NCBI RefSeq assembly: GCF_032444005.1
Contig: NC_091283.1
Coordinates: forward strand, 168,640,001-168,704,000
From: Ranitomeya imitator
Lineage: Eukaryota
DNA: 64,000 bases
Direction of reading: 5' to 3'
The notes under the pieces were generated by a model that was given only the letters and a program-made list of their open reading frames with translations, was not told where the DNA came from and did no database searches. A program made the translations under genes and the position numbers. Position 1 is the stretch's first letter; every line of letters starts with the position of its first letter. Below are positions 4,153 to 47,500 of this stretch, in pieces.

Positions 4153-4465
4153 GGCTATGTGCACACTTTGCAGATTCCACTGCGGATTTTTCCGCAGCGG
4201 AATTGCAAAATCCGCAGTGAAAACCCATCGCGGTTTTTACTGCGTTTTCTTCTGCGGATTTTCAACTGCAGTTTTCTATTGGAGCAGCTGAAAATCCGCA
4301 GAAAAGAAGTGACATGCTGCGGAATGTAATCCGCAGCGTTTCCGCGCGGATTTTTCTGCAGCATGTGCACAGCGTTTTTTGTTTCCCATAGGTTTACATT
4401 GAAATGTAAACTCATGGGAAACTGCTGCGGATCCGCAGCAAAATCCGCAAAGTGTGAATATAGCC
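4153..4465. mobile_element. MITE, PIF/Harbinger-like
   Basis: TIRs ggctatgtgcacac / gtgtgaatatagcc, TTA on both sides. Confidence 0.8.
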
Positions 4466-12382: not shown

Positions 12383-14032
12383 CAGTTAGGGCCAGAAATA
12401 TTTGGACAGTGACACAAGTTTTGTTATTTTAGCTGTTTACAAAAACATGTTCAGAAATACAATTATATATATAATATGGGCTGAAAGTGCACACTCCCAG
12501 CTGCAATATGATAGTTTCCACATCCAAATCGGAGAAAGGGTTTAGGAATCATAGCTCTGTAATGCATAGCGTCCTCTTTTTCAAGGGACCAAAAGTAATT
12601 GGACAATGGACTCTAAGGGCTGCAATTAACTCTGAAGGCGTCTCCCTCGTTAACCTGTAATCAATGAAGTAGTTAAAAGGTCAGGGATGGATTCCAGGTG
12701 TGTGGTTTTGCATTTGGAAGCTGTTGCTGTGAGCAGACAACATGCGGTCAAAGGAACTCTCAATTGAGGTGAAGCAGAACATCCTGAGGCTGAAAAAAAA
12801 GAAAAAATCCATCAGAGAGATAGCAGACATGCTTGGAGTAGCAAAATCAACAGTTGGGTACATTCTGAGAAAAAAGGAATTGACTGGTGAGCTTGGGAAC
12901 TCAAAAAGGCCTGGGCGTCCACGGATGACAACAGTGGTGGATGATCGCCGCATACTTAATTTGGTGAAGAAGAACCCGTTCACAACATCAACTGAAGTCC
13001 AGAACACTCTCAGTGAAGTAGGTGTATCTGTCTCTAAGTCAACAGTAAAGAGAAGACTCCATGACAGTAAATACAAAGGGTTCACATCTAGATGCAAACC
13101 ATTCATCAATAACAAAAATAGACAGGCCAGAGTTAAATTTGCAGAAAAACACCTCAAGAAGCCAGCTCAGTTCTGGAAAAGTATTCTATGGACAGATGAG
13201 ACAAAGATCAACCTGTACCAGAATGATGGGAAGAAAAAAGTTTGGAGAAGAAAGGGAACGGCACATGATCCAAGGCACACCACATCCTCTGTAAAACATG
13301 GTGGAGGCAACGTGATGGCATGGGCATGCATGGCTTTCAATGGCACTGGGTCACTTGTGTTTATTGATGACATAAGAGCACACAAGAGTAGCCGGATGAA
13401 TTCTGAAGTGTACCGGGATATACTTTCAGCCCAGATTCAGCCAAATGCTGCAAAGTTGATTGGACGGCGCTTCATAGTACAGATGGACAATGACCCCAAG
13501 CATACAGCCAAAGCTACCCAGGAGTTCGAGTGCCAAAAAGTGGAACATTCTGCAATGGCCAAGTCAATCTCCAGATCTAAACCCAATTGAGCATGCATTT
13601 CACTTGCTCAAATCCAGACTTAAGACGGAAAGACCCACAAACAAGCAAGACCTGAAGGCTGCGGCTGTAAAGGCCTGGCAAAGCATTAAGAAGGAGGAAA
13701 CCCAGCGTTTGGTGATGTCCATGGGTTCCAGACTTAAGGCAGTGATTGCCTCCAAAGGATTTGCAACAAAATATTGAAAATAAAAATATTTTGTTTGGGT
13801 TATGTTTATTTGTCCAATTACTTTTGACCTCCTAAAATGTGGAGTGTTTGTAAAGAAATGTGTACAATTCCTACATTTTCTATCAGATATTTTTGTTCAA
13901 CCCTTCAAATTAAACGTTACAATCTGCACTTGAATTCTGTTGTAGAGGTTTCATTTCAAATCCAATGTGGTGGCATGCAGAGCCCAACTCGCGAAAATTG
14001 TGTCACTGTCCAAATATTTCTGGCCCTAACTG
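12383..14032 (+). mobile_element. Tc1/mariner transposon, full length (1650 bp)
   Basis: TIRs cagttagggccagaaatatttggacagtgacacaa at both ends, TA flanks at 12381-12382 and 14033-14034. Confidence 0.95.
12742..13777 (+). pseudogene. Tc1 DD34E transposase with one frameshift near 13527
   Basis: Paired-like HTH N-terminus, GRP, WTDE, MDND and SPDLNPIE motifs. The frame changes between QEF and SAKKWNIL; restoring 2 nt gives D34E spacing. Confidence 0.9.
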
Positions 14033-20670: not shown

Positions 20671-22699
20671 ACCCTTGGTAAAATAAAACAAATTGGAGCT
20701 GAAGTAAATTTTTTGTGTAAAAAAAGTTAAATGTTCATTTTTATTTAAACATTCCAAAAATTCCTATTAAACACCTGAAGGGTTAATAAACTTCTTGAAT
20801 ATGGTTTTGAGCACCTTGAGGGGTGCAGTTTTTAGAATGGTATCACACTTGGGTATTTTCTATCATATAGACCCCTCAAAATGACTTCAAATGAGATGTG
20901 GTCCCTAAAAAAAAATGGTGTTGTAAAAATGAGAAATTGCTGGTCAACTTTTAACTCTTATAACTCCATAACAAAAAAAAAATTTGGTTCCAAAATTATG
21001 CTGATGTAAAGGAGACATGTGGGAAATGTTACTTATTAAGTATTTTGTGTGACATATCTCTGTGATTTAATTGCATAAAAATTCAAAGTTTGAAAATTGC
21101 GAAATTTTCAAAATTTTCGCCAAATTTCCGTTTTTTTCACAAATAAACGCAGGTACTATCAAAGAAATTTTACCACTATCATGAAGTACAATATGTCACG
21201 AGAAAACAATGTCAGAATCACCAGGATCCGTTGAAGCGTTCCAGAGTTATAACCTCATAAAGGGACAGTGGTCAGAATTGTAAAAATTGGCCTGGTCATT
21301 GACGTGCAAACCACCCTTGGGGGTAAAGGGGTTAAAATCCGAAATGTTGGCCTACTGAAATGTATATTCAGTAAATGCACTCAATACTTGGTCGGGGCTC
21401 TTTTTGCATCAATTACTGCATCAACGTGGCGTGGCATGGAGGCGATCAGCCTGTGGCACTGCTGAGGTGTTATGGAAGCCCAGGTTGCTTTGATAGCAGC
21501 CTTCACCTCGTCTGCATTGTTGGGTCTGGTGTCTCATCTTCCTCTTGACAATACTCCATAGATTCTCTATGGGGTTAAGGTCAGGCGAGTTTGCTGCCAA
21601 TCAAGCACAGTAATACTGTTGTTTGTAAACCAGATATTGGTACTTTTGGCAGTGTGGACAGGTGCCAAGTCCTGCTGGAGAATTACATTTCCATCTCCAA
21701 ACAGCTTGTCAGCAGAGGGAAGCATGAAGTGCTCTAAAATTTCCTGGTAAACGGCTGCGCTGACTTTGGTTCTGATAAAACACAGTGGACCTACACCAGC
21801 AGATGACATGGCTCCCAAACCATCACTGATTGTGGAAACTTCACACTAGACCTCAAGCAGCTTGGATTGTGGCCTCTCCACTCTTCCTCCAGACTCTGGG
21901 ACCTTGATTTCCAAATGAAATTTCAAAATTTACTTTCATCTGACAACACCTTGGACCACTGAGCAACAGTCCAGTTCTTTTTCTCCTTGGCTCAGGTAAG
22001 ACGCTTCTGGCGTTGTCTATTGGTCATGAGTGGCTTGACACAAGGAATGTGACACTTGTAGACCATTGAGTGGTGGATCTTGAAGCAATGACTCCAGCAG
22101 CAGTCCACTCCTTGTGAATCTCCCCTAAATTTTTGAATGGCCTTTTCTTTACAATCCTTTCAAGGCTGCGGTTATCCCAGTGCTTGTGCACTTTTTTCTA
22201 CCACACTTTTTCCTTCCACTCAACTTCCCATTAATATGCTTGGATACAGCACTCTGTGACCAACCAGCTTCTTTAGCAATGACCTTTAGTAGCTTACCCT
22301 CCTTGTGGATTGTGTCAGTGACTGCGTTCTGGACATCTGTCAAGTCAGCAGTCTTCCCCATGATTGTGGAGCTACTGAAACAGACTACAGGACCTTTTTT
22401 AAACGCTTAAAAAGCCTTTGCGGGTGTTTTTTGTTAATTATTCTAATTTACTGAGATAATGTCTTTTGGGTTTTCATTGGCTGTAAGCCATAATCATCAA
22501 CATTAACGGAAATAGACACTTGAAATAGATCACTCTGTGTGTAATGACTCTATATAATATGAGTTTCACTTTTTGTATTGAAGAACTGAAATAAACTTTT
22601 TGATGATATTTTAATTTTGTGAGAAGCATCTGTATGAGAAAAAAAATGAAGTTTCTCTTTGCTTGTCTTAATCTTGTCCTGTCTGTTTTGGGGAGACAG

Positions 22700-22832
22700 G
22701 CTGAAATCATGGCTGGAAGATGCAGAGAGGAAGCTGCCTAAGGTGTCGCAGGCCCTGGCGGAGAAGCCCCAACCCGAGCTCAGCCATTCGGCCCCCCAGC
22801 CCAGCAGTATCCTGTTCTCATTTACCAGATAG
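22700..22832 (+). CDS. SYCE1: SYCE1-family last coding exon (LKSWLEDAERK...SFTR*)
   Basis: Phase-2 acceptor cag|G gives RLK as in human RLKEELEK; total CDS is 840 nt (279 aa); AATAAA at 22927-22932. Confidence 0.75.
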
Positions 22833-23224
22833 GCTCCAGAGCACAACACGCAGGTCTCCTCTTCTTCCCAGGGGTTATTTCTGCTTTGCATAGTAATTAT
22901 TCTGTAGTCTGTCCAAAGTATTATTAAATAAAGTTTTCTCCATTGTATTAATTGCCTGTATTTATTACAATCTGTGCTCACAGAGCAGTGAAATTAGTCA
23001 GATGCCAAAAGAGATACCAGGCTGTCACCTGTTTTTTTTTTTTTACCAATCGATGCCACACTTGGATCTGGTTTTTCGCACAATAATGAGGCTTTGCCAC
23101 GTCCCCATCTGAAGTTGACAGTAGATCAGATGAAGCAGCCAGGGGGGATAAATAAGGGAATTTTGCTTAGTTGTCACAATTCAGGTGTACAGGGAAGTGT
23201 GTCATCTGACCCCTGTGACCAGCC

Positions 23225-23469
23225 TATAAAAAGAGGAAAGACGTACTGTACGTGGGATGGGTTTTCCTGCCCCAGACTGGCACTTTGGCCGCACTAGGAT
23301 ACAGCTGAACGCAGGAGGTCCAGTATTATAGGAGCTATTCTGAAATATTAGTCTGCATGATCACCCATAGGGAAACTATTTGGTGACAGTTCTCTTTACA
23401 TTCATGCTGAAGTCGAAGCGGATGAGCAAATGACAGGCTTTTAGTAGGACACACACCCACCAACAACTC
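23225..23469 (+). promoter_or_regulatory. Candidate TATA box and non-coding first exon of the death-domain gene
   Basis: TATAAAAAG at 23225; donor C|gtaaga at 23469/23470. Confidence 0.35.
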
Positions 23470-23563
23470 GTAAGAGGAACACGGACAAAGCATTTCCTTT
23501 CATTTTTGCTGCTGAGTTGGTTTCACTTTTATACAAAGAAGATTTCCAGGAGACCTGACGGAC

Positions 23564-23582
23564 ATGGATTACCACAAGCCAG
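23564..23582 (+). CDS. Unassigned death-domain protein, candidate coding exon 1 (MDYHKP)
   Basis: gacATGG Kozak, donor AG|gtaatc, phase 1 fits the next exon. Confidence 0.5.
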
Positions 23583-23721
23583 GTAATCCTGCACATGGCT
23601 CTGTTTTCTGGGTACATCACTCATAGGACTCTGCTGGAAATTCATTGTCGACAAGGATCCAACCGCACGCATCAATGTCCACATCATGACTCCTATGTGG
23701 ACGCATTGACATCATCTATAA

Positions 23722-24212
23722 GGCTGCTTTCACACATCAGGTTTTTTGCCGTCAGGTACAATCCGGTGAATTTAGAAAAAAAACGGATTGGGCAAAAGTT
23801 GCCGCTGGATCCCTTTTTTTTTCATAGACTTGTATTAACGACGGATGGCCGCACGTTTCATCCGTTTTTCGCCAGATCCGTCAAAAATTGGTTTTCCGGC
23901 GGACGTAGAAGAGTAGAAAACGGACATTTTTGTGTCTGTCGAAAAAAAACGGACAGCGACGGATCCGTCGTTTGCTAAAATGGAACCCTATGGCACCGGA
24001 ATAGTCAAATAACGGAATCCAGCAACGGATTCCGTTTTTTTTTAACTGAGCATGCTCCGATTTTTTTGGGATCCAAATAGCTGGATCAGCTAGTCGGATC
24101 CGTCCAAGAAACGGATCCGTTGCATCAGTTTTTCACAATCTGCGACGGATACGTTTTTTTCAACATTCGACGAATTGTGACTGATGCCAAAAACTGATGT
24201 GTGAAAGCAGCC
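23722..24212. mobile_element. MITE, PIF/Harbinger-like
   Basis: TIRs ggctgctttcacacatcag / ctgatgtgtgaaagcagcc. Confidence 0.8.
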
Positions 24213-24389
24213 TATGACTGATGTGCCTAAGAGCAGTCCGGGCAATGGCGTCATTGGGACATTGCAGCTGGGGATTAGTTGTAAAGGCTTTCCACCTAGC
24301 GACTATGGCGCACGTACACTATTCGGGCATCATGTGGGCAAGCTGCGACTCCACTGACCATATTCTTTATTATATCCTTCCTCCTGCAG

Positions 24390-24605
24390 TGAGATGTGGC
24401 CCGGTGGAGGATGATGAGATGGAAGATCACAGAGAGGTCAGGAATATAGCAGAGGAACACGATGACCCCACGGAGAATATTCCCTCTATTGGGCCATTAC
24501 TTTCTTGTGAACCCTTTTCCACTAAAAGTCTGCAGATTTCTATTGATCGTAATTCTACCGCAAGTCTGCAGATTTCTTGCTCTGTCCCTCCCACAGCAAC
24601 GGCAG
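24390..24605 (+). CDS. Unassigned death-domain protein, exon 2 (acidic, Ser/Pro-rich)
   Basis: Strong acceptor ccttcctcctgcag, donor AG|gtaaga, open phase 1-1. Confidence 0.6.
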
Positions 24606-24867
24606 GTAAGAATAATAGTGTCCCAAAAGGGGCAATTTACAGGGATGACCCACCCTGAATATTCACCGATTTATAAATTGGGGGTGGGGTGTTAATAAAA
24701 AGTTTTTGTTATTGTCAGTTTTAATAATTCTACTTACCTCCCATTGCTATGGAATTGAATGCAATCTGTTGCTCCCTTTTATCCACCATTTCAGATTGGG
24801 CTCAACAACGTGCCCCTTGGCTGAGCGTCATCTTATAGACACATTCACAAGTTCATTTTCTTCTCAG

Positions 24868-24968
24868 ATTGTCGCTGGTCTCCGGACGTAATTTCTACCT
24901 TTCACAAGCTTCCCGCTTTGAATGAAGACATAGTTGCCACACTTAACTCTTTGCTCAGTTTATCAATG
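24868..24968 (+). CDS. Unassigned death-domain protein, exon 3 (DCRWSPD...EDIVATLNSLLSLSM)
   Basis: Strong acceptor ttttcttctcag, donor ATG|gtaggt. Confidence 0.55.
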
Positions 24969-25560
24969 GTAGGTGCCCCCTGTATCCTCCCGTCAGTGGC
25001 ACAATGCATGCTTATATATGGCAATCAGGACAGCTTTTTTGATACTGTGTTCTTTGTAATTAATGGCATCCATCTTTTCCCAGCCATGAACATTACATAC
25101 TCCCAATCCCCTAGTGTCGTCCTGCAGCTCATATTGGGGCTGTAGCCTTATGGGCTGGCAAGTAGCAGTCTGTGCTCATGGGCGCTCCCGGTCTTCTTGC
25201 ATTACATACATGACATGGTGTCTCAGTGGTAAGCATTCCTTTGCTCGGCCCTGACCAGCTTGTCTTTTTACTTTTGTACACTTTCCATGTGTGCACTATG
25301 GCTGTGACTTGCTGTAGCACAACGGTTTAGTGCCGTCACTTTGAAGTCTATGGTATCTTGCAACTAAGGACAGAAAATCCAGCACATTTAGAAACATTAG
25401 CAGTATGGCACAGGGCAACAGCACAGATCATTAGATACGATATCGTGATACAGTACCAGAATCTCACGTCACCGTGTATCATCTGGCCGCTAAACTAGAA
25501 GGGCTGCTAGTACTACAGAACTTTGTGTGCCGCCACACAGTCCTGGAGCACACGCTTTAG

Positions 25561-26275
25561 GCCGGGGTCACACTAGTGTATGGCATCAGATGTGATATGC
25601 TAGCGACCCTCGGCTCATGTGAAAGTGATCTGATTGTCAGTGCTCCGATTGTCTCACATGAAACAATCGCAGCACAGGTGTGGAGGAGACAAAGTCATTT
25701 CCCCATCTCCACTGCTGCTGGTGTCTGCTGTAATCACACTGCACTCATATGACATCCGAGTGCAGTGTATTGATGAGTGTGATCTGATTCTTGGATGCAA
25801 TCCCAGTAAGCTGAATTAGCATGAGAAAATAATCGCAGATCTGAGCTCCCACATAGTATAACACTGGGCCGAGTTCTAGGTGCTGTTTTAGCATTCGGCC
25901 GTATTATACACTTGTGTGACTCCGGCTAGGTTCACATTGCGTTAGGGCAATCCGTTAAGCGCATAGCACTAGCGGATTGCGCTAACGCAAGGTTTATTTT
26001 GGTGCCGCGTTCGCCGTCCCCGCTAGCGCAGATCCCCGATCTGCGCTAGCGAGGGACGCACCTCGGACGCTGCAAGCAGCGTCCGAGGTCCGTCACAAAA
26101 GAACGGCACATCGCTAGCGCGTGCTGAAAATGGCATGCGCTAGCGATGCGCTACAGGCAGAAATCACATTGCTGTCAATGGGTGCGCTAACGGACCCGTT
26201 GCACGGCGTTAATTGCGACATTTTCGCCGTGCACCGCAGTTAGCGTTAACCCATTAACGCAATGTGAACCTAGCC
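25561..26275. mobile_element. Two abutting MITEs (ggccggggtcacac family and taggttcacattgcg family)
   Basis: Two TIR pairs visible; the second family recurs at about 40886-41232. Confidence 0.7.
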
Positions 26276-26394
26276 TTAGTGTTTGCATCACGCCTATAAA
26301 TGCGACTCCGGGGACATAGCTCACTTTACAGAACATATTGCTGCAGTTTTCATGGCGCAGAATCAGTATCTGAGCTTATCACATTTGCCCACAG

Positions 26395-26554
26395 CCAAGA
26401 CAACCTCTAAACGTGAAGGATTTCTTAATGGATTTTCAGGATCATCCAGATAATTACAAACAACTGCGGACACTGGCGCAAAAGCTGAAGTCTCTGGGAC
26501 GAGAAGACGTGGTCAAGGCCATGCACAACGAGGGAGCCGTTCTGCGCTGGCTGG
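26395..26554 (+). CDS. Unassigned death-domain protein, exon 4 (PRQPLNVKDFL...LRTLAQKLKSLGREDVVKAM...LRWL)
   Basis: LxxLxxxLxxLGRxDVV resembles death-domain helices 5-6; cag|...G|gtgag, phase 0-1. Confidence 0.65.
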
Positions 26555-27183
26555 GTGAGATCTGCCACAAACAGCCCATTCTCTACAGGGGTCAATATAG
26601 CAATGTACCATTCACTGACATGTAACAATATGGCAGCCATGTCTCATTTGTAACATTGACATCCAGCTCTCATGATAAAATATCCATAGTATTGTAAGTC
26701 CACAGGGGTGCATGAGATAGGAGCTGTTTGTAGGCTCTCACACTGTAGGGAGCATTTAGCTGTCCTTGTGATGGGACCATTGTGAAAGAAAACCAGTCAT
26801 ACCTGAATGGTGAGATTTTCCCTGGACGCTAGATACAAATCAGCTTGATAATTGGCAGGTTGGCAAATTGTGTATGTGAAAAAAATAATGGACTATAATG
26901 TAGGCAGATCAGAAGGAATGTCATGGTCAGGTGAAGCTTATGGCACCAATTAGGCATTTTGCTCCCATTACCCTACGGTGAGCCTGGGCAGTAACAGTCC
27001 AGGAACAGCGGTGGGCTCAGCCATGTACAAATGTCTGTGCAAAGGTAATGAAAAGTGGCATGCAATTTACGTATATAAAATCCTTTATTCCAAATCATGG
27101 ATTATAATGGAGGCAGATCAGGAGGAATGCGTCTGGCCACTACGTGTGCATCGGTGTACAGCTCATGTATTGTCAGTCTGCAG

Positions 27184-27276
27184 GTCCGCTGTTACCAGAG
27201 GAGCATCTTGTGAGAGACATCGTCCCTTCCTTGTGGGTGCCACTTACAGTAAAGCTCAGCCTCTCTCATCCGAAAG
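27184..27276 (+). CDS. Unassigned death-domain protein, exon 5 (GPLLPEEHLVRDIVPSLWVPLTVKLSLSHPK)
   Basis: tctgcag|...AAG|gtaagg, phase 1-1. Confidence 0.7.
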
Positions 27277-27688
27277 GTAAGGCTCCGACACCAGCTTCTA
27301 TTCATGTGTCCTCAGGCCTCTCACATGTGGAGAGAACCGAGATCCTAGAACCTACGAGTTATCTCACAGGGCAGTCTCTTTCATGGAGACATCTTTTCAT
27401 GCCTGTTTGTAACGATCAGCGCCAATCTGGAGGTATTGCTGTTCCTGTCTTTCTACACCGGTGTATGTATGTATATATATATATATATATATGTATGTAG
27501 ATGGCTGGTAGAGGTGACTATAAGTTGTCAAAACACAACTGCATATCCTCCAGTAAGCTACTGCCCCACCACCAGGGAAGCCCAGGTGACACATTCCTAC
27601 CCCATGTTCCCTTCAGCTCCAACCTACATCTCGGATATGGAGTCTGCAGAATACACTATCCCCACGTAATCATATGTTCCTACCACAG

Positions 27689-27798
27689 GATATGACTGGA
27701 AATGGCTCGCAAATCAACTGTCTATCCCTTCTCATTTTATTGACCTATGGGAGCAACAAGGTGGACTGCCAGCTGAAAACGTCCTGAAGACCTGGCAG
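27689..27798 (+). CDS. Unassigned death-domain protein, exon 6 (GYDWKWLANQLSIPSHFIDLWEQQGGLPAENVLKTWQ)
   Basis: Fits the death-domain DWxxLAxxL...P...LxxW pattern; canonical sites, phase 1-0. Confidence 0.78.
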
Positions 27799-28318
27799 GT
27801 ACAAGATGTACATATGGTGACCATGTCTTATCCCCTCCTCAAGCTGAATAATCTGAGACTTGGGGTCCTGGAGGCGACAACTCCGATCACCCCATCAGAG
27901 GATATGGGGTCATGTGATGATGTGACCACCATCAATAAGTCTGTATTCAGATAATTTCGTGCGGGATGGGGTTGCAGTTTTTAAGCCAAAACCAAATGTG
28001 GATCCAGCAGGAAGACGTTTACATCCTTTCTTCATATTCCTATTGAATCCACTTCTGTCTCTGCCATAAAAACTGCAATACTTTCCAAAAATCAGTGTGT
28101 GAAACCACCGTAATCAGCTACGAGCTGCAGCAATACAGGGTCCTGGGCATGATACACCAGCTAATGAATCCTTAGCCTGCCCCATGGACCGCCATCACCT
28201 CCTTAATAGCACTGGTGAAACTACTACTCCCATCATCATATTGGGAGTTGGTGTCTTGTAGATCACTGGAGCGGTGCAGAATCAGCACCTTTGTGTAATG
28301 GCAGCCTTTCTTCCACAG

Positions 28319-28399
28319 GTGACGGTGAGTGAGGCCACGGTGGGACGACTCTTTGATCTGCTGATTGAGCACCGGGAGGATCTGGCAGCGATGCTATGA
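28319..28399 (+). CDS. Unassigned death-domain protein, last exon (VTVSEATVGRLFDLLIEHREDLAAML*)
   Basis: Strong acceptor ctttcttccacag; ATVGRLxxLL...R.D matches death-domain helices 5-6; AATAAA at 28445-28450. Confidence 0.78.
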   Translation: MTVSEATVGRLFDLLIEHREDLAAML

Positions 28400-28664
28400 T
28401 GTGCGGGGCATTGCCCTCTGTGCAGCAGAATGTCCTCTAATTATAATAAAAGAAATTATGTTAAAGTTATGGAGGAGCAGCTTTATTGAGGAACACATTG
28501 ATGAGAAAAGTAGCAGAATGTGGCACACGCAGGTCCGTGGTCGGCCATCTTAGCCCTGACGAGTTTCTGTGCTTGGTTAGGTTCTACAGTCCATACTGGA
28601 GCGGGATCCTCTGGATGGTGAGGGCAGGCCGTGTGTACAGATTACACACAGATCCTCTCCAACA

Positions 28665-28892
28665 CTACAGGCCAGTGAAGAAGCCATTCTGAGAAGGGTC
28701 AGTCCTATCTGTCCGACTTGATTTAACCCCTTTCCCAGGGACAGGGGTTGTGGAGTATTTTGGAGGGTAACGTATGAACAGACGATCTTCCTCCCTTTTG
28801 ATCCAGCGGAGCAGCTTGGTTATGACATTTATTGCACCCACCTTAGTCACTAAAGAGCTGAACGCCGTGTAGAGCTCAAACTTACTGGTGAC
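28665..28892 (-). CDS. MON1B: Vacuolar fusion protein MON1 homolog B, last exon
   Basis: VTSKFELY...KLLRWIKREEDRLFIRYPPKYST...NGFFTGL* matches the MON1B C-terminus. Confidence 0.95.
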   Translation of the reverse strand, partial: VTSKFELYTAFSSLVTKVGAINVITKLLRWIKREEDRLFIRYPPKYSTTPVPGKGVKSSRTDRTDPSQNGFFTGL

Positions 28893-29148
28893 CTGCGGAG
28901 GGGACGACAAAAGGAACCCAATTATGTCCTGCATTGCATCTGGAGCACACGCATCGCCCCTGAGCACACGCATCGCCCCTGAGCACAGATACCTAGTCAG
29001 ACATGGAATAAAGGCCACTGCCATACTATATAATGATGGGACATTCTTGCTGTTGATGTTTTTGGTTTTCTATCTCGAACACAGTCCAATACCTTATGGC
29101 CATAAACAGTTTTTTATCCACAGAGTTAGTCAATTTTCAGATTCTTAA

Positions 29149-30050
29149 CCCCTTAACCACCGGGCCATTTTTCGCTCCCCTTCTTCCCAGAGCCATAACT
29201 TTTTTTATTTTTCCGTCAATATGGCCATATGAGTCCTTGTTTTTTGGGGGGACGAGTTGTACTTTTGAACGACACCATTGATTTTATCATATAGTGTACT
29301 GGAAACGGAAAAAAATTCCATGTGCGGTTAAATTACAAAAAAAAAGTACAATTCCACAATTGCTTTTTTTTTTTTTTTTACCATGTTCACTAAATGCTAA
29401 AACTAACCGTCCATTATGATTCTCCGAGTCATTACGAGTTCACAGACATGTTTGCTAATTTTTTTCTCGGTACGCCATTTACTGTTCGGATTATTTTTAT
29501 ATTTTGATAGATTTGGTATCTTTGCATTCAGAACCGTCCAATTTGTATTTTTTATATATTTTTTAATGTTTTATTTTGAATGGGCAAATGGAGGGCGATT
29601 TGAACTTTTATATTCTTTCATACTTTTTTTTTTTTTTACCTGCTTCAATAGTCTTCTTAGGAGACTTGAAGCTGCGATCTTCTGATGGCTAGTGCTACGC
29701 AGAGCAGAGCTTCAGCCCTGCTATGTGTAGCAAATATCATCATCCGCTATGAAGGCCGGCCACTGGAGAAGCGCTCGTAGCAGATTGGCAGTGACAACCG
29801 CAGGGGTCTCCTGCAGACCTCCTGTTGTCATGTCGACCCATCAACGCACTGCGATCATGTGACAGGGGCGCCGATGGGCGGGGTTAGTGACGCGCTTCCA
29901 GTGCGATCATGTTAAATGTCAAACTCTGACAGTGGCATTTAACAAGTTAACATCCGCGGATGAATGACAATTCCACCCACGGCTATTAGGGGCACATATC
30001 AGTTGATCAGATCAGCCGTCATGTGCTGGAAAAGATGTGGGTTCAGCGCA
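29149..30050. mobile_element. Partial TTAA|CCC-type (piggyBac-like) non-autonomous element
   Basis: Starts ttaaccccttaaccacc; right boundary not resolved. Confidence 0.45.
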
Positions 30051-30344
30051 GGAGTGCTGAATTTCAGTAGCCAATCCATTTATTCCCAGGAAAAATAAGC
30101 CACCGCCCAAACTTTGGTCATCAGCTAGCGTATGTCCGGCTTCCGTGTGCTACTGTCATATAAGAATGCAATCAGTATGGTCTATATTACAGGAGACAGA
30201 AGAGCTACATGCCACTCAGGACAACTGTCCAATGCTTTACACAGCCTCAGGGTTGGGACAGATTATACTGTGACATCTCCAGTAACGTCTAGGAATCCCG
30301 CAGGTGCACAACCCTACATCCTAAGCACAGACATATAGTATCAC

Positions 30345-30492
30345 CCAGGCTAGCAGCGTCTCCTTCTCTGCCACATGGTAAATGAGCCGTAAGGGTCTGG
30401 CTGAGCTGTGGATGCGGCAGTGCAGGTACCGGTACAGATCAAAGAGCCGCTGTCTTTCCTCCTCACTGGTGTACGGGCCGTCGGGTTCAGGG
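30345..30492 (-). CDS. MON1B: MON1B coding exon 4 (PEPDGPY...RPLRLIYHVAEKETLLAW)
   Basis: 148 nt, canonical sites, phase 2-0. Confidence 0.93.
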
Positions 30493-30814
30493 CTGCAGAG
30501 TGACAGATGACAGATGTTACATCATAACATGGAGTTATTCCAGTGATGATATTAAAATCAATGCTAAATCTTAGGTAAATATGAGCACATGGGTGTACAT
30601 CTATGATTTCATGGCCTGCAGGGCAAAATTATGCATCTGAGCTCTGATGCGCTGTGTGCAACTTTCTATTACAGTGCGACCCTTTCCAATTGTCAGAAAG
30701 CTGCAGGACGGCAACATTTCCAAATTTTGGTTTGTCACCTTCTGATAATGCTAATCTGTATGTTGCACATAATGTTATTTTACAAATTTACATCTATATC
30801 CTTACAAAAAGTAC

Positions 30815-31613
30815 CTGGTAAATTGTGGAAGCTGTTGGTAGGTTTCAGGGATGTCAAGGGGCTTGTACACAAAATGTAAGAGCTCTGGGACCCCTACAAG
30901 AGAGGCACTATATGAGCGGCAGCGGAGGGCCCCAGCCAATGTCTGCAGAGAGTTCTGTGCTTCCATGGCCTCCTGGATCTTTCTCTTACAGCCAGACACT
31001 GCGTAGAAAGACTCTTTATCCGTGGATAGGAGCACCAAACACACTGTGCAGTTGGGGTCCAAATATGAGATGTAAGCATAAAAATAGCCATCGGGGTTAA
31101 AGCGTGGAAGGCAAATAGGAGTCCAGATCTCACCTGCCTGAAAGGCAGAAGAGGCTCCGATAAGGTTCAGCAGCAGCTGGAGGTCTGCAGGGTCCAGACG
31201 GCAATCCTCAATCACTGCCCGCTCCTGCACCACAGTCACAAGCTGCTGCTCTGCCACTAAGATGGAGAACACTAAATTGGGAGTGATGGCTTTAGTTAGA
31301 ATGGAGCTCAGGGAGTCCCGCAGCGGGCTTGGCAAGGCCACGCACCGTACTGCCCCAAGGAGGAAGCCAGGGTCAGTATCCAGCAAGTCCAATAGGCTAT
31401 CCAGGATCTTTTCAGAGCCGGTGAGAAGACGCCGCAAATCGTAATTCTTCTTGCGCTCAAATATTCGAGCCACACTTGCCTGTGTGAGCATGCTGATTAT
31501 CTGGTAGTAAACGTACTGCAGCTCCTTTCTCAGCTGCTCCTCTGACTGAGGGGCCCGCGACACAGACACTAACACCAAGGGGCCCTGCTGCAGGAACACC
31601 ACTTTCTGCTTGT
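30815..31613 (-). CDS. MON1B: MON1B coding exon 3 (longin domains)
   Basis: FLQQGPL, NYDLRRLL, RLDPADLQLLL, CLPRFNPDG and KPLDIP...QLPQFT motifs; 799 nt. Confidence 0.95.
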
Positions 31614-31639
31614 CTGTGAAAAAAAACAGAGCAACAATC

Positions 31640-32975
31640 AGCATTGCAGCTTCACAAATACCCTCCCAATAGCCACCATTACATAACAATAGCCATCAGA
31701 CCCCAAAACCAGACATTACTTTACCAAACAAGGCAAGTCTTTGTTGTCCGACCACCACAACCCCTTTGTATACCAGACCAATGCCCAAACACCATAACCT
31801 CCCTATCCAACATCACTGAAGGAGAACTTGCTCATCTTCTCTCCAAATCACACCTCACCACTTGTGCACGTGACCCCATCCCATCCCACCTCCTTCCCAA
31901 CCTCACCACCACACTAATCCCATCCCTAACCCATCTCTTCAACCTATCACTAACTTAAGATACCGTCCCCTCTGCATTCAAACATGCAACAGTCACACCT
32001 ATCCTCAAAAAGCGCTCTCTTGACCCGAGCGCTATGTCTAGCTATCGCCCTATATCTTTGCTCCCAAACTCCTTGAGCAGCACGTCCATGCTGAACTTTC
32101 CTCTCACTCTGCATCTAATTCACTCAACAACCTACAATCTGGCTTCTGTCCCCACCATTCCACTGAGACTGCCCTGACCAAACTTTCTAACGACTCACAG
32201 CCAAAGCTAACTAACAATTCTCTATACTCCTCCTTCTTGACCTGTCCTCTGCCTTCGACACAGTTGACCACTGCCTCCTACTACAGATCCTCTCTTCCTT
32301 TGGTGTAAAAAATCTCACCCTATCCTGGATCTCTTCATACCTTTCCAACCGCACATTTAGCGTTTTCTACTCCCATACTACCTCTTCATCTCGCCCTCTC
32401 TCTGTTGGTGTCCCTCAAGGCTCTGTCCTTGGACCCTTACTCTTCTCAATCTATACATTTAGCCTGGGACAACTCAAAGTCCAATGGCTTCCAGTACCAT
32501 CTATATGCTGATGACACTCAGATCTACCTCTCTGGTCCAAACGTCACCTCTCTCCTGTCCAGAATCCCGGAGTGTCTATCAGCCATATCCTCGTTCATCT
32601 CCTCTCGCTTCCTCAAGCTCAATGTGGGCAAATCTGAAATAATTATCTTTCCTTCATCTCACATATCTTCCCTACCTGATCTATCACAATCTATCCACCA
32701 CATTTGGATCCTTCAGACGGAACCTGAAAACCCATCTCTTCAAAAAAGCTTACAACCTGTAATGACCACGCGGCCACCTCAACACCTACTGCAACCCCGA
32801 CCTACTGTCTCCTTCCCCATAATCCTGTAGAATTTAAGCCCACAAGGGCAGGGTCCTCTCCCCTCTGTACCAGTCTGCCACTGTTAGTTTTGTTTACTGT
32901 GATATTTGTATTTTGATTTAACCCCATCTAGTGTACCATGGAATTAATGTGCTATATAAATAATAATAATAACAA
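31640..32975 (+). mobile_element. L2 LINE fragment (degraded RT)
   Basis: [21 protein letters not shown] and YADDTQIY motifs; (taa)n tail near 32970. Confidence 0.85.
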
Positions 32976-33010
32976 CTTTACATCATAGATCACATAAAAC
33001 TGTCACGTAC

Positions 33011-33937
33011 CAGAATGGATGGAGCGGATGGCGTTATTTCCACTCTGAACAAAACTGACCAGCGCCATCATTACTCCCATGGTGGAGGACAGGGCCTCCT
33101 CATTGCCATAGCGGGAGTAAATCGGCTTTCCTGCCTCGCTCAGGACAAACACGTGCTTCCGTTTTGTGCGCCAACTCTCTGCGGTCACGTCCTCCTCTCG
33201 CTGAACAGGGGTAGTAGGTGGAGACGCATCTGACGTCACTCCTGCCACCACTGAGGAGACACCAGGAAAATCCCCAGAGTCATCCAACACATTATCTGTT
33301 AGTCCCTTGTGCTCATCATCATGGTCACCAGCATCTGTAGATTGTCCAGGGTCGGCAACCACAAGATCACTTAGTTTGGTCTCATCCGCAGAAGCCTCTG
33401 TATTGTTATACTTGAGGCTCTTTTTGTGTGTCTGCCCAGTGTCATTGCATTCTGTTGATTCTTTGCATGACGGTTCTTCACCAATAGTTTGCAGGGCCTG
33501 TGGTGGCTGGCTGCCGTCATATACCATGCCACCATTCTCGCCTTCTACATCTTCTGCAGCCGACATACAGCCTTGCTGTAAACAGTCACGTATATCTAAT
33601 CCCCCCACCTCATTTACAGTAGCAGTGTCATGGTCCACCACATTCAAGGTTTCTGGTACTTCCATTAAGCCCATGGAAACTTGTCCTGTCTCTTCTGCAG
33701 TTCCCCTGGTGCTGTCCTCCAGAGAACCCTCAGAGCATTGTGTATCGGTGACATCCATGCCCTCCTGTAAGGGACCACGGTGGGGATCGTCTCTGGGAAA
33801 ATGTGACAGAACAGATGCATCATGAGGACATCCCTCATCTGAGCTCTTTGGCCGTGTGTCCAAGGGCTGGACATCGAGTGGTGACGGTAAAGTTTGAGGG
33901 TCATCGCTGGTCTCATTTTCTGTTTGATCCAGGAGAT
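33011..33937 (-). CDS. MON1B: MON1B coding exon 2 (long acidic region plus [23 protein letters not shown])
   Basis: 927-nt open phase 1-1 exon with poly-T acceptor; conserved MON1 motif. Confidence 0.93.
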
Positions 33938-36618
33938 CTGTGGGAGAAAAAAAAAACTTGGTTAATTACAATTGGCCCAGACCAAACTATATGAAACCAG
34001 AAGAATACAGGCCCTTAGTAGCAGGGAGCCAGGATCTAGAGGGAAGAAGTGGGACATACATATCTGCATGCGATTTCCCATCCAGAGGAGGTTAAGACTC
34101 TGGTCATATCAGCGTAAGAGGCTCTGACCGGTAGGGTCACGTGACTTTTTCTTAGCCGAATTTAGCACAAGTCCGCTTCAAAACTGCCTGTAAAAAGCAC
34201 TCAGAAACTGTTCCAAAAAATCCTATTCATTTATATGTAAAGACATCTTGCTGTTCACACGTTTCTTAGCATCCTTTAACCGGCACAGGTTTCCAAAAAC
34301 GCCAAGCGGTTAAAATGATTCATCTGACCATTCTTCAGGCATCTTCCACTTGGAAGAAGCTTTATACTTTACAATTGAAAGGAATGGGAAGGCAAAAAAG
34401 AACACCCAGAAGACTCCAGGACGACTTTTGAAGTGAACTTTGAGCGTCTCCGAGAACAAAATGCTTGTGGTTTACTCACTGCCTAACAGACTACAATAAT
34501 CACCTACAATCTGCCCCACAAAAAAACACTTACAAAGCTCAACAGGTAACGAAGAGAAAAAAAAATGCACAAAAAGATGCTTCAAGAAAGAAAAGAATTG
34601 TGAAAATGCCGGCGTTTCTGTATCAGCTTCCGTCTGAAAACCTTGTCTGCTTTGCTTGCCTGAAAAGAATGTCATGTGAACACAGCCTTAGAAAGCTCAG
34701 CTGCGGACTCTGATGCTTTCCATAGAGAAGATATCACTGCATGCAGCAGTACGTTCCTGTCAAGTGAAACCGAATACAATCAGGTCAACGGGGTCCTCCG
34801 TATACCGCGGGTCCGTATACCGTGGGTCCGAGATGGATCAGTTACAGTATTTCGGCTTCAGGAAACCACTATGCAGACATGAACAGCGCATAGGACAAAG
34901 TATTAGAAAGCTGCAGTCCGTCTACAGCCCAGTGGTCAGCACCAATGTCTAAACCTTCCGTCTACTAAGGAAATATTGGGAAATATTCTGTTTTAGAGAA
35001 GTTCCTCCACAGCAGTGCAAATGTGTTTGGCCTTGGAATCCTGTCCCTGCACAGAGGGTGGTGTGACCTCTGATGAGCCCTGGCCTCCAGTCCAGGCGGT
35101 GCTCTGTGTTCCCACCCTCTCCTACTTATTGGGGGTCTGCTCTGTACTCTTGGTGCCAGGCCTGCTCTCGGCGTTTTCAGTACTTTATCTATTTTCAGCC
35201 TCAAAAAAATTAAAGACTATGAAGAGTCTAACAGAATAAGGGTCTCATTCAGATGTCAGTGACATCCGCAATGCCCGGACTGGCTGTGGCTCTCCTGGAC
35301 GCAGTATGACGGCTTCGTGTCTTGCTATGAGGTGGTCATGCTCAGGTTGGGAGATCGTGCAATAGTGATCCGAGCTCAGACAGATTTGCATGAATGATAT
35401 TCATGAGTCTTACTCGGACGCTGCAGAGTCACAGGACTTATGTCATAATGAGGTGGCAGATGAATGGAAGCAGGGCCCCTATTATGGTTGGCAGATGCCC
35501 CTCGCCATGCGATCTTGGGGAACTGATGGGTTGTCATGGCTGTGCCTAATGAAGGCCCCTGTAAATGCCATCTTTGGCAATCAATGAAACAATGGCAGGT
35601 TCAAGTCCCTTTAAGGAGTCTAAAGAATAAAGCAAATACACTGAATACGATTTGTTAAAAATATGAGAAAATATTAAAAAAAAAAAAAATTAAATCACCC
35701 TTCCAAACATATTTGGAATTGCCATGACTGTAAAATTTTGATCAATCAAGATATAAAATTATTTTAACCATATGTTAAATGCAGAGAAATAGTTGAAACG
35801 CAAGAATGGATTTTATTCGATCACTGCACTCCCCACAAAAAAACAGCTTTAAAAAGATCAAAACGGCGCATTTACGCCAAAATGGTATTAATAAAAGTGT
35901 AAGCTCAGGTAGTAAGAAACAATTTCACACAGCTCCATTGGTGGAAAAATACAAGCCATTATGGGTTATAATTAGGGGCACCTGGATGGCTGTGACTAGC
36001 ACCAGGCCACATGTTAACTGGTCAGTCAGCTGGGGGAGCTGAGCAGAGCGGATTTGTGTTGGAGCTGACGAGACAAGCCAGAATCTCGATGAGAAGAGTC
36101 TCCGCAGGCCGTGTACACCAAGCTTTGAGTATCACTGCTCACGATGGACGACAGCTGTTTTGTGTGACCAGATTGGAATTATCTCAGCCGTGTGTGAGAA
36201 GCCAGGGTCTGTAGGTTTATTTATTGTTTGGACAAGGCTAGAGTTTTTATGCTGCCAGGTCATTTTTACTGCATAATGAATGCAACAAAACCCACAAACC
36301 AATGCCAGAATTGTGCGTGTGTGAGGGGTTTGCATCATTTTACTGAACTTGGGAATTTTTGTCCTCCCTCTCATAGTACATTACTTAAGAAAGTGAAACT
36401 TCAACTTGTTCCACAAAAAAGAAGCCCTCCTACGGCTATCTTGGGGGACAGATTAAAAAAAAAGACAACTTCTGGCTTGAGAAAAAAGTTAAGAAAAAAA
36501 GTGAAAGCAGGGGGCTAATATTCTGCTGCAGGAGGTGAATCTGGTGACCCCTACAGACCTAAGACACCACTGGTTTCTGTCTATTTGGGGGGGTTCTCCT
36601 TACATTCACTCCAGTAAT

Positions 36619-43219: not shown

Positions 43220-44410
43220 CCGCTCCACACTCCCCAATATACCGGCCATGGGGCTCCGCACTCCACTGTATCCCCCAATATACCGACCATGGGGGCTCCA
43301 CACACTCCTGTATCTCATCAATAAACTGGCCATGGGGCTCCGTGCTCCCCTGTATCCCCCCAATATACCGACCATGGAGGCTCCGCACACCCCTGTATCT
43401 CCCCAATAAACCGGCCATGGGGCTCTGTGCTCCCCTGTATCCCCCCAATATACCGACCATTGGGCTCCGTGCTCCCCTGTATCCCCCCCCCCCAATATAC
43501 CAACCATGGGGCTCCATGCTCCCCTGTATCCCCCAATATACCGGCCATGGGGCTCCATGCTCCCCTGTATCCCCCCCAATATACCAACCATGGGGCTCCA
43601 TGCTCCCCTGTATCCCCCCCAATATACCAACAATGGGGCTCCGTGCTCCCCTGTATCCCCCCCCCAATATACCGGCCATGGGGCTCCGTACTCCCCTGTA
43701 TCCCCCCAATATACCGGCCATGGGGCTCTGTGCTCCCCTGTATCCCCCCCAATATACCGGCCATGGGGCTCCGTGCTCCCCTGTATCCCCCAATATACCG
43801 GCCATGGGGCTCCGTGCTCCCCTGTATCCCCCCAATATACCGGCCATGGGGCTCCGTGCTCCCCTGTATCCCCCCAATATACCGGCCATGGGGCTCCGTG
43901 CTCCCCTGTATCCCCCCCCCCCAATATACCAACCATGGGGGCTCCGTGCTCCCCTGTATCCCCCCAATATACCGGCCATGGGGCTCCGTGCTCCCCTGTA
44001 TCCCCCCAATATACCGGCCATGGGGCTCCGTGCTCCCCTGTATCCCCCAATATACCGGCCATGGGGCTCCGTGCTCCCCTGTATCCCCCAATATACCTAC
44101 CATGGGGCTCCGTGCTCCCCTGTATCCCCCCCCAATATACCAGCCACGGGGCTCCACACACCCCTGTATCCCCCCAAATATACCAACCATGGGGCTCTGT
44201 GCTCCCCTGTATCCCCCTATATACCGGCCATGGGGGCTCCGTGCTCCCCTGTATCCCCCCCCAATATACCAGCCACGGGGCTCCACACACCCCTGTATCC
44301 CCCCAATATATCAGCCATGGGGCTCCGTGCTCCCCTTTATCCCCCTATATACCGGCCATGGGGGCTCCGTGCTCCCCTGTATCCCCCAACATACCGGCCA
44401 TGGGAGCTCC
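43220..44410. repeat. Minisatellite of about 42 bp (ccccaatataccggccatggggctccgtgctcccctgtatcc), about 28 copies
   Basis: Read directly; C-run length varies between units. Confidence 0.95.
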
Positions 44411-44520
44411 GTGCTCTGCAGCTTAGGTCGAGGAAGATGTAGATCGCAGCGGAGCTGCAGGACCTTCGGTGATGTCACCACCATGTGACCAGTGACGCGT
44501 GTGGGCGGAGTCAGCCCTCC
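44395..44520 (-). promoter_or_regulatory. Candidate MON1B promoter and first exon
   Basis: CpG-rich; CLEAR/M-box-like GTCACATG (44482-44489) and GC box (44503-44510) upstream of a minus-strand donor G|gtatgt at 44395/44394. Confidence 0.4.
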
Positions 44521-44570: not shown

Positions 44571-47500
44571 CGCACTCAGGCATGAAGTACAGCTGCACTC
44601 AGTATAGTTGCACTCAGTACAGTCGCACTCGGTACATTCGCACTCAGGCAGTACAGACGCACTCAGTATAGTCGCACTCAGTATAGTCGCACTCAGTACA
44701 GCCGCACTCAGTACAGCCGCACTCAGTATAGTCGCACTCAGTACAGCCGCATTCAGTATAGTCGCACTCAGTACAGCCACACTCAGTATAGTCGCACTCA
44801 GTACAGCCACACTCAGTATAGTCGCACTCAGTACAGCCGCAGTCAGTATAGTGGCACTCAGTACAGCCGCACTTAGTATAGTCGCACTCAGGCAGTACAG
44901 CCGCACTCAGTATAGTCGCACTCAGTATAGCCGCACTCAGTATAGTCGCACTCAGTACAGCCGCAGTCAGTATAGTCGCACTCAGTACAGCCGCACTTAG
45001 TATAGTCGCACTCAGGCAGTACAGCCGCACTCAGTATAGTCGCACTCAGTACAGCCGCACTCAGTATAGTCGCACTCAGTACAGCCGCAGTCAGTATAGT
45101 CGCACTCAGTACAGCCGCAGTCAGTATAGTCGCACTCAGTACAGCCACACTCAGTATAGTCGCACTCAGTACAGCCGCACTTAGTATAGTCGCACTCAGG
45201 CAGTACAGCCGCACTCAGTACCGCCGCACTTAGTATAGTCGCACTCAGGCAGTACAGATGCACTCAGTATAGTCACACTCAATACAGTCGCACTCAGGCA
45301 GTACAGACGCACTCAGTATAGTCGCACTCAGGCAATACAGACGCACTCAGTAGAGTCGCACTCAGTACAGTCGCACTCGGTACATTCGCACTCAGGCAGT
45401 ACAGACGCACTCAGTATAGTCGCACTCAGTACAGCCGCACTCAGTATAGTCGCACTCAGTACAGCCACACTCAGTATAGTCGCACTCAGTACAGCCACAC
45501 TCAGTATAGTCGCACTCAGTACAGCCACACTCAGTATAGTCGCACTCAGTACAGCCGCAGTCAGTATAGTGGCACTCAGTACAGCCGCACTTAGTATAGT
45601 CGCACTCAGGCAGTACAGCCGCACTCAGTATAGTCGCACTCAGTATAGCCGCACTCAGTATAGTCGCACTCAGTACAGCCGCAGTCAGTATAGTCGCACT
45701 CAGTACAGCCGCACTTAGTATAGTCGCACTCAGGCAGTACAGCCGCACTCAGTATAGTCGCACTCAGTACAGCCGCACTCAGTATAGTCGCACTCAGTAC
45801 AGCCGCAGTCAGTATAGTCGCACTCAGTACAGCCACACTCAGTATAGTCGCACTCAGTACAGCCGCACTTAGTATAGTCGCACTCAGGCAGTACAGCCGC
45901 ACTCAGTACCGCCGCACTTAGTATAGTCGCACTCAGGCAGTACAGATGCACTCAGTATAGTCACACTCAATACAGTCGCACTCAGGCAGTACAGACGCAC
46001 TCAGTATAGTCGCACTCAGGCAATACAGACGCACTCAGTAGAGTCGCACTCAGTACAGTCGCACTCGGTACATTCGCACTCAGGCAGTACAGACGCACTC
46101 AGTATAGTCGCACTCAGTACAGCCGCACTCAGTATAGTCGCACTCAGTATAGTCGCACTCAGTACAGCAGCACTCAGTATAGTTGCACTCAGGCAGTACA
46201 GCTGCATTCAGTATAGCCGCACTCAGGCAGTACAGCTGCACTCAGTATAGTCACACTCAGTACAGCCGCACTCAGTAAAGCCGCACTCAAGCGGTACAGC
46301 GGCACTCAGTATAGTTGCACTCAGGCAGTACAGCCGCACTCAGTGTAGCCGCACTCAGGCAGCACAGCCGCGCTCAGTATAGTTGCACTCAGGCAGTACA
46401 GCCGCACTCAGTATGGTCGCACTCAGGCAGTGCAGCTGCTCTCAGTATAGATGCACTCAGGCAGTTCAGCCGCACTCAGTGTAGTCGCATTCAGGCAATA
46501 CAGCCACATTCAGTATAGCCGCACTCAGGCAGGACAGCCGCACTCAGTATAGTCGCACTCAGTACAGCCGCACTCAGTATAGCCACACTCAGGCATTAAG
46601 TAAAGCCGCACTCAGTATAGCTGCATTCAGTATAGCCGCACTCAGGCAGTACAGCTGCACTCAGTATAGCCACACTCAGGCAGTACAGCCGCACTCAGTA
46701 TAGCCACACTCAGGCATTAAGTAAAGCCGCACTCAGTATAGCTGCATTCAGTATAGCCGCACTCAGGCAGTACAGCTGCACTCAGTATAGCCACACTCAG
46801 GCAGTACAGCCGCACTCAGTATAGCCACACTCAGGCATTAAGTAAAGCCGCACTCAGTATAGCTGCATTCAGTATAGCCGCACTCAGGCAGTACATCCGC
46901 ACTCAGTATAGCCACACTCAGGCGGTACAGCCGCACTCAGTATAGTTGCACTCAGGCAGTACTGCCGCACTCAGTATAGCCGCACTCAGGCAGTACAGCC
47001 GCACTCAGTATAGCTGCATTCAGTATAGCCGCACTCAGGCAGTACAGCTGCACTCAGTATAGCCACACTCAGGCAGTACAGCCGCACTCAGTATAGCCAC
47101 ACTCAGGCATTAAGTAAAGCCGCACTCAGTATAGCTGCACTCAGTATAGCCACACTCAGGCAGTACAGCCGCACTCAGTATAGCCACACTCAGGCGGTAC
47201 AGCCGCACTCAGTATAGTTGCACTCAGGCAGTACTGCCGCACTCAGTATAGCCGCACTCAGGCAGTACAGCCGCACTCAGTATAGTTGCACTCAGGCAGT
47301 ACAGCCACACTCAGTATAGTCGCACTCAGGCAATACAGCCGCATTCAGTATAGCCGCACTCAGGCAATACAGCCGCACTCAGTACAGCTGCATTCAGTAT
47401 AGCCGCACTCAGGCAGTACAGCCGCACTCAGTATAGTCGCACTCAGTACAGCCCCACTCAGTACAGCCGTACTCAGTATAGCTGCACTCAGTACAGCTGC

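Follow-up and report, generated by a model that had tools for sequence, protein, structure and literature searches.

A transcribed death-domain gene of Ranitomeya imitator encoding a putative TRAF6-binding adaptor

We describe a gene in a 64,000-nucleotide stretch of the Ranitomeya imitator genome (RefSeq assembly GCF_032444005.1, contig NC_091283.1, forward-strand positions 168,640,001 to 168,704,000; henceforth the window, to whose first letter all coordinates refer). Both innate immunity and cell death depend for their organisation on death-fold adaptors, among them MyD88, FADD, TRADD and the IRAKs, and, to our knowledge, the vertebrate set of these proteins is usually treated as complete. 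The gene at 23564-28399 on the plus strand is an intact, transcribed and selectively constrained gene for a 259-amino-acid (aa) cytosolic adaptor that has no enzymatic domain and ends in a bona fide death domain (DD).

Gene structure, transcripts and selection

An earlier reading of the letters alone had proposed seven exons with GT-AG sites, a 780-nt frame for 259 aa and a following AATAAA, and the same model was obtained when we rebuilt the gene from the window sequence. All six introns are bounded by GT..AG, and the joined exons amount to 259 codons plus a TGA. A motif scan places a TATAAAA box at 23225-23231, upstream of the transcript start. The longest spliced contig begins at 23241, just past this box, and therefore the 5' untranslated region, which is part of exon 1 (23241-23563), begins directly after it; contigs covering 23241/23302-23579 cross the first splice joint. 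The coding part of exon 1 (23564-23582) holds the ATG and aa 1-7, and its joint to exon 2 (23582/24390) was present in four of four runs. Exon 2 (24390-24605, aa 7-79) encodes an acidic disordered region, with low predicted local distance difference test (pLDDT) values in a model of an orthologue, in which both short motifs treated below are found. The two halves of a first death-fold domain are encoded by exon 3 (24868-24968, aa 79-112) and exon 4 (26395-26554, aa 113-166, including LR.L...LK.LGR.DVV). Exon 5 (27184-27276, aa 166-197) supplies the linker between the two domains and the death domain's helix 1, exon 6 (27689-27798, aa 197-233, DWKWLA...) helices 2-4, and exon 7 (28319-28399, aa 234-259 and the TGA, ATVGRLFDLL...) helices 5-6. 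These five exons rest on the gene model and the contigs, with AlphaFold in addition for exons 3 and 5 and Pfam for exons 6 and 7. The AATAAA polyadenylation signal lies at 28445-28450, 46 nt past the stop.

The RNA evidence comes from contigs of four public runs belonging to four different studies, placed on 23200-28800. The runs bear no label other than 'RNA?', but contigs from which GT..AG introns are missing represent spliced RNA. All six introns were spliced in each of the four runs, with joints exactly at the exon ends of the model once the cut offsets are allowed for, and the gene is therefore confirmed at the transcript level. Several contigs terminate at 28427-28452, near the AATAAA, although contig ends are no proof of the end of a transcript. 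Full-length orthologous transcripts were found in other frogs as well (e.g. L001). Given that orthologues from other species give tblastn matches with the exon ends of the model, and that 246 of the 259 residues are identical to those of the Ranitomeya variabilis protein, the open frame is not a chance one.

Intron 4 (26555-27183) is present in unspliced form too, in contigs 26527/26591/26624/26821-27212 of all four runs, with a depth about 0.3-0.9 times that of the spliced contig and far above the other introns. When it is retained, the frame is predicted to stop 22 codons past aa 166, and the resulting product would keep both short motifs and the first domain and be without the death domain. 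Two further introns contain transposon-like elements with terminal inverted repeats (23720-24210 in intron 1, 25924-26278 in intron 3); the RNA contigs over them reach a summed depth of up to ~1,700 with many loose ends, which indicates that they belong to abundant dispersed repeat families.

For selection, the coding sequence was compared with the full-length frog transcript L001, which at ~73% aa identity is more distant than R. variabilis. The ratio of non-synonymous to synonymous substitution (dN/dS) was 0.32-0.40 for the whole protein, not near 1, and 0.17-0.21 for the death domain, 0.38-0.46 for the N-terminus and 0.40-0.50 for the first domain. The protein is thus under purifying selection, most strongly so in its DD. 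Many positions of the DD do not vary from frogs to coelacanth and, in an alignment of the DD only, out to bichir, bowfin, gar and sturgeon.

Domain architecture and its history

The original prediction of a stand-alone C-terminal death domain was borne out by Pfam and by structure prediction alike. Residues 167-259 match Pfam Death (PF00531) with 28.7 bits against a cut-off of 22.6 (E 1.5e-6), and the same match was present in 16 of 16 orthologues, none of which has a Pfam match to TIR, kinase or ZU5, as had been expected. The motifs on which the prediction was built (DWKWLANQL, ENVLKTWQ, ATVGRLFDLL, LRTLAQKLKSLGREDVV and, twice, DIV...LSLS) are all in the translation. AlphaFold2 was run on the 259-aa R. 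variabilis orthologue (95% identical) with 16 aligned sequences, and residues 80-259 were modelled with pLDDT ~90 as two six-helix bundles, at 84-165 and 180-258. In VIA-align the second bundle superimposes on the IRAK4 DD with Z 11.7 (root mean square deviation, rmsd, 1.7 over 86 residues, 26% identity), on the Pelle DD with Z 11.6 and on the MyD88 DD with Z 11.4, the rmsd ranging over 1.7-2.0; other death domains score Z <=9.6, and CARD, death effector domain (DED) and PYD structures lower still. Foldseek returned no match at E <=0.001 for either this model or one of the first domain by itself.

A search of the PDB with the single DD sequence gave nothing significant (MyD88 at E 1.3), and a profile was required. 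Built from the DD of 21 orthologues and compared with solved structures, it matched the MyD88 DD best (E 1e-8, 38 bits, aligned end to end), followed by UNC5B (1.6e-6), p75NTR (9e-6) and the FADD DD (2.5e-4); the IRAK DDs were weak (IRAK3 0.025, IRAK4 0.11). The C-terminal domain is hence closest in sequence to the DD of MyD88, which is also among the three best structural matches, and DW..LA, P...L..W and VGRL..LL are common to both. The frog protein has no TIR or intermediate domain and ends with its DD, which is C-terminal and spread over three exons, whereas the MyD88 DD is N-terminal and encoded by a single exon; it also has an extra death-fold domain and a putative TRAF6-binding motif. 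An identity as MyD88 is ruled out by the lack of TIR in the 16 orthologues.

The first domain (aa 79-166) is less easily placed. Modelled alone it forms six helices with pLDDT 88.8, and of its 50 best structural matches almost all are CARD, DD, DED or PYD, with Z <=5.9, values that fall below the noise guide of the alignment tool for helical bundles. It has no Pfam match, and resembles helices 4-6 of the NRADD DD weakly (E 0.018). In a Saccoglossus homologue the corresponding segment does score above the Pfam Death cut-off (23.4 bits against 22.6). An hhalign comparison of the first domain with the second was not significant, so that an internal duplication is not supported. The segment is a confidently predicted second six-helix bundle that the models would place in the death-fold superfamily, not specifically among death domains. 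Of the probable tandem arrangement first proposed, the two bundles stand, as predictions, and a tandem death-domain architecture is plausible on the models; the assignment of the first bundle goes as far as the superfamily.

A word search with aa 79-259 found ~17 orthologues, from R. variabilis (259 aa, identical at the above 246 positions over its whole length) to Xenopus tropicalis LOC100498557, all of them named 'uncharacterized protein' and all with PF00531; the collection searched did not include the protein of the window itself. A profile search added Bombina, Discoglossus, Pelobates, Spea and the coelacanth. An exhaustive profile search of 1.84 billion representative proteins, covering annotated proteomes rather than genomes, gave 21 matches at E <=1e-30, plus the sturgeon Huso at 1.3e-29; these comprise frogs (including Rhinophrynus), the newt Lissotriton, axolotl, the caecilian Rhinatrema, the lungfish Protopterus, coelacanth, bichirs, bowfin, sturgeons and gar. 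The named matches in these proteomes included no protein from amniotes, teleosts, sharks or lampreys, and the lack of amniote and teleost matches suggests, as far as protein sequences can tell, that the family was lost in both lineages. The earlier view of an amphibian or other non-mammalian adaptor with no human orthologue thus agrees with the absence of mammalian matches, although the family is not specific to amphibians. Similarly, the gene is unassigned in the sense that all its orthologues are uncharacterised, but it is no discovery in itself, having been annotated elsewhere as 'uncharacterized protein LOC...'. What appears undescribed is the family itself, together with its architecture, motif content and phyletic distribution; a limited literature search found no paper on any orthologue.

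The next matches, from E 1e-25 downward, are tandem death-domain proteins of hemichordates, amphioxus, corals and an annelid. In several of these next-best homologues the family profile spans both domains (E 1e-25 to 1e-13), and the tier after them has two Pfam Death stretches. Matches of that lower tier differ in carrying other effector domains such as RING, OTU, COR or CARD, and the closer homologues are mostly without the PxExx[DE] motif described below; all of these proteins are uncharacterised.

Outside the frogs the orthologues are 350-780 aa long, and several of the long ones have an N-terminal domain with a sub-threshold Pfam DED match (bowfin 31.9 bits against 35.9). A profile of this domain, in which Bombina and Discoglossus were included, matched only DEDs in the PDB: that of caspase-8 (1.4e-5), that of FADD (8.8e-5), then vFLIP, PEA-15 and cFLIP. 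The domain is present in fish, caecilian and lungfish orthologues and missing from those of Xenopus, spadefoots and neobatrachian frogs; Bombina and Discoglossus keep a homologous domain by alignment, with no DED in their individual Pfam scans. A tblastn of the 64-kb window with long, DED-bearing orthologues gave no DED remnant, and no second copy of the gene either, only noise (e.g. at 37.8-38.1 kb, within repeats). From this distribution the ancestral layout was DED, linker, death-fold domain and DD, and the frog protein is a shortened version of an older form, the DED having been lost in most frogs. In the caecilian orthologue it is the first death-fold domain that is not detectable.

The ancestral form, with its N-terminal DED and C-terminal DD (in fish, lungfish and caecilian), is reminiscent of FADD. 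The frog protein differs from FADD in having no DED, the family by a further death-fold domain and by a long linker that carries the putative TRAF6 motif, and the FADD DD is a weaker match than that of MyD88. With a disordered N-terminus and no DED remnant in the window, an identity as FADD is ruled out.

Loss of the family in amniotes and teleosts, loss of the DED in frogs and frequent retention of intron 4 might together suggest that the locus is a functionless, transcribed relic of a gene on its way out. We find this scarcely credible because of the conservation: more than 20 anuran genera have an intact frame, the window protein and its R. variabilis orthologue share 95% of their residues, dN/dS lies clearly under 1, and many DD columns are invariant from frogs to coelacanth and to early ray-finned fishes. 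The family is better described as a conserved extra death-fold adaptor, composed of DED, putative TRAF6 motif, death-fold domain and MyD88-like DD, that survives in amphibians, lungfish, coelacanth and early-branching ray-finned fishes, in most frogs without the DED.

Two short motifs and a possible role in signalling

Residues 1-77 of the orthologue model are disordered (pLDDT <50 at 1-11 and 15-77). Among the columns of aa 1-78, only P11-V-E-D-D-E16 and L66-(Q67)-S69 reach 90% conservation in frogs, and these two motifs, which the original prediction had not remarked, hold most of the functional information.

The first of them, PVEDDE (aa 11-16, 24401-24418), fits the TRAF6 MATH-binding motif PxExx[FYWHDE] (bioRxiv 10.1101/2022.05.08.491058), and its P, E, D and E do not vary among 16 frog sequences. 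The hexamer is identical to the TRAF-binding motif of IRAK-M, which, when transferred into MAVS/IPS-1, restores signalling to IRF3 and NF-kB (PMC3538592). The UL37 protein of herpes simplex virus carries the same PVEDDE, which recruits TRAF6, and V at +1 and D at +4 are predicted to favour TRAF6 binding (bioRxiv 10.1101/2022.05.08.491058). The pattern PxExx[D/E] is found in the linker of nearly all vertebrate orthologues, where the sequence is otherwise unalignable: PEEDEE in newt, PEENEE in axolotl, PVENDD in caecilian, PMESED in lungfish, PEECDE in bichir, PQESDE and PEELDE in bowfin, PEESDE in gar and Huso, and PEENDE in Xenopus and Discoglossus. In the alignment of the long forms, the P and the E of the motif are the sole invariant columns of a linker of ~200 aa. 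PVEDDE is thus a putative TRAF6-binding motif that lies within an accessible disordered segment.

The same acidic residues would have another meaning if the protein were a cell-death adaptor with signalling of the FADD/caspase-8 type, in which case the motif would be a caspase site (xExD) and not a site for TRAF6. VEDD, EESD, EECD and EEND each put an Asp at the caspase P1 position, the long orthologues begin with a DED whose profile matches those of caspase-8 and FADD, and the FADD DD is itself a significant match to the DD profile. The caspase-site reading is disfavoured because the frog protein is without a DED (and the window without a remnant) and because the axolotl motif PEENEE has no Asp; newt PEEDEE and lungfish PMESED also have none at that place, whereas all three fit PxExx[DE]. 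The DD of MyD88 is moreover a far better match than that of FADD, and the Glu that would follow the cut is a poor caspase P1' residue. A cell-death adaptor of this kind is, in our view, very unlikely.

The second motif, SLQIS, occurs twice, at aa 53-57 (24527-24541) and aa 65-69 (24563-24577), the latter found in the motif search and in the alignments as the conserved copy, with L66, Q67 and S69 at least 90% conserved. Both are coded by an identical 15 nt repeated at a distance of 36 nt, and to judge from the nucleotides the motif was probably micro-duplicated in frame not long ago. Hyperolius, Rana and Anomaloglossus likewise have two SLQIS-type copies. The form [S/D/E/N]LQIS is present in nearly all frogs, in newt, in axolotl (two copies) and in caecilian, that is, in all three amphibian orders, and the lungfish has ELCIS at a similar position; a motif search of the orthologues did not find LQIS in those of ray-finned fish or coelacanth. 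SLQIS has the pLxIS form, in which p is hydrophilic and x any residue and whose serine is phosphorylated in MAVS, STING and TRIF to dock IRF3 (PMC7672473), and is a putative IRF-docking motif. Adaptors with a pLxIS motif extend beyond these three to TASL and TASL2 (PMC11759703).

The frog protein resembles the pLxIS adaptors MAVS, STING, TRIF and TASL in combining an oligomerising module with a disordered region of TRAF6-motif and pLxIS type (PMC7672473, PMC3538592, PMC11759703). It differs from them in that its module is a death domain rather than a CARD, a TIR or a membrane domain, and in having no sequence homology to them; the likeness is one of motif form, with IRF binding putative. The main output could accordingly be sought in IRFs, with IRF3, IRF5 or IRF7 docking on a phosphorylated LQIS, the death domains serving for oligomerisation and TRAF6 helping to recruit the kinase. 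The fit to pLxIS, the persistence of LQIS across amphibians (in the caecilian orthologue even though its first death-fold domain is undetectable), its doubling in several frogs including this one, its standing with PVEDDE as the only conserved features of the disordered region, and the TASL/TASL2 precedent all favour such an IRF-activating adaptor. A four-residue pattern is weak evidence, though, and the motif is absent from the ray-finned fish and coelacanth orthologues and skipped in some annotated isoforms (P0004, P0006); no TBK1-binding motif was identified. On balance we regard IRF activation as unlikely to be the main output.

For the IRAK family the likeness lies in a Myddosome-type DD, that of IRAK4 giving the best structural match, joined to a TRAF6-binding motif that in IRAK-M is PVEDDE itself (PMC3538592). 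Here the frog protein differs in having no kinase or pseudokinase, in carrying its motif N-terminal to the DD where IRAKs carry theirs C-terminally, and in the weak sequence match of the IRAK DDs. Lacking any Pkinase match, and only 259 aa long, it is ruled out as an IRAK/Pelle kinase.

The reading we prefer, with a probability of about 0.5, is that the protein is a kinase-less scaffold that is recruited through its death domain and brings in TRAF6, possibly also IRFs. The death domain would join oligomeric platforms of other death domains, for which the MyD88/IRAK (Myddosome) type is the most plausible candidate, and the N-terminal tails thus clustered would recruit TRAF6 via PVEDDE, leading to NF-kB/MAPK output. 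In this way the scaffold would take the role of the C-terminal tails of IRAKs, and LQIS, when phosphorylated, may add a docking site for IRFs. Because most frogs are without the N-terminal DED, coupling to FADD or caspase-8 is no longer expected of the frog protein.

The same components could also make a decoy or brake, acting on death-domain assemblies by capping or diluting them or on TRAF6 by sequestering it, and such a protein would damp signalling as IRAK-M or the short MyD88 isoforms do. The protein consists of interaction modules only, with no effector domain (no kinase, TIR or DED), the DED as an output domain was lost in frogs, and the transcript with intron 4 retained would encode a form without the DD. 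IRAK-M, with which the TRAF6 motif is shared, is generally regarded as an inhibitory IRAK. A pure decoy, however, would have no need of two strictly conserved output-type motifs, and the IRAK-M motif is signalling-competent once transplanted into MAVS (PMC3538592). We consider a decoy rather improbable.

Several points weigh against the scaffold reading itself. Every functional step in it is read from motifs and from a predicted fold. A likeness to the MyD88 DD at 24-26% identity does not establish entry into the Myddosome, and the DDs of UNC5B and p75NTR are significant matches to the DD profile too. PxExx[DE] is a low-complexity pattern within an acidic region. The death-fold assignment of the first domain lies within helical-bundle noise, and comparing its profile with that of the second domain gave no significant match. 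Finally, a motif scan of 22400-23700 found no ISRE (interferon-stimulated response element) or NF-kB consensus near the promoter, and none for STAT or AP-1.

The two motifs make the function directly testable and could reveal a non-mammalian wiring of TLR/IL-1 signalling to TRAF6 and IRFs, a matter that bears on the defence of amphibians against ranaviruses and chytrid fungus. More doubtfully, amphibians, and perhaps lungfish, may possess a further pLxIS-type adaptor without mammalian counterpart, whose MyD88-like DD would join assemblies of Myddosome type and whose tail would dock TRAF6 through PVEDDE and, once LQIS is phosphorylated, an IRF. If true, this would amount to a direct, IRAK-independent route from TLR/IL-1R-MyD88 to NF-kB and interferon. 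The X. tropicalis orthologue LOC100498557 makes genetics feasible.

Genomic neighbourhood and other features of the window

In the dendrobatoids R. variabilis and Anomaloglossus, the gene order is SYCE1, then the orthologue, then an HPS1-like longin gene of 716-728 aa, while in gar it is a NACHT gene, the orthologue and CCDC115. Synteny gives no link to a named human gene. At the spotted gar locus (1-6866) the orthologue lies directly downstream of the NACHT/NLRC4_HD2 gene, which is of NLR type and may hint at an innate-immune gene neighbourhood.

In the window, the downstream neighbour is convergent: a minus-strand gene at 28467-34000 with Fuz/MON1/HPS1 longin domains 1 and 2, represented by open reading frames (ORFs) at 30805-31689 and 33006-33863. 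Contig depth climbs beyond 28467, and therefore no more than a few dozen bases separate the 3' ends of the two genes. Far upstream, at 806-1417 on the plus strand, a single 204-aa ORF in a stretch of GC 0.61 matches a Got1/Sft2-like family (E 9e-17), and could either belong to a vesicle-transport gene, as its first or sole exon, or be a retrocopy.

Much of the remainder is repetitive. Between 43232 and 58233 there are ~15 kb of minisatellite arrays: a 42-bp unit repeated 28 times (43232-44416), a 15/34-bp unit repeated 200-440 times (44586-51642) and a 24/47-bp unit repeated 120-240 times (52431-58233). The GC skew flips at ~52 kb, and the arrays account for many overlapping ORFs in all frames. 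Mobile elements are represented by a Tc1/mariner-type transposase ORF at 12742-13587 on the plus strand (HTH_Tnp_Tc3_2, DDE_3) and, at 59944-63993 on the minus strand, by a Ty3/gypsy-type retroelement with long open gag-protease and reverse transcriptase-RNaseH-integrase-chromodomain ORFs.

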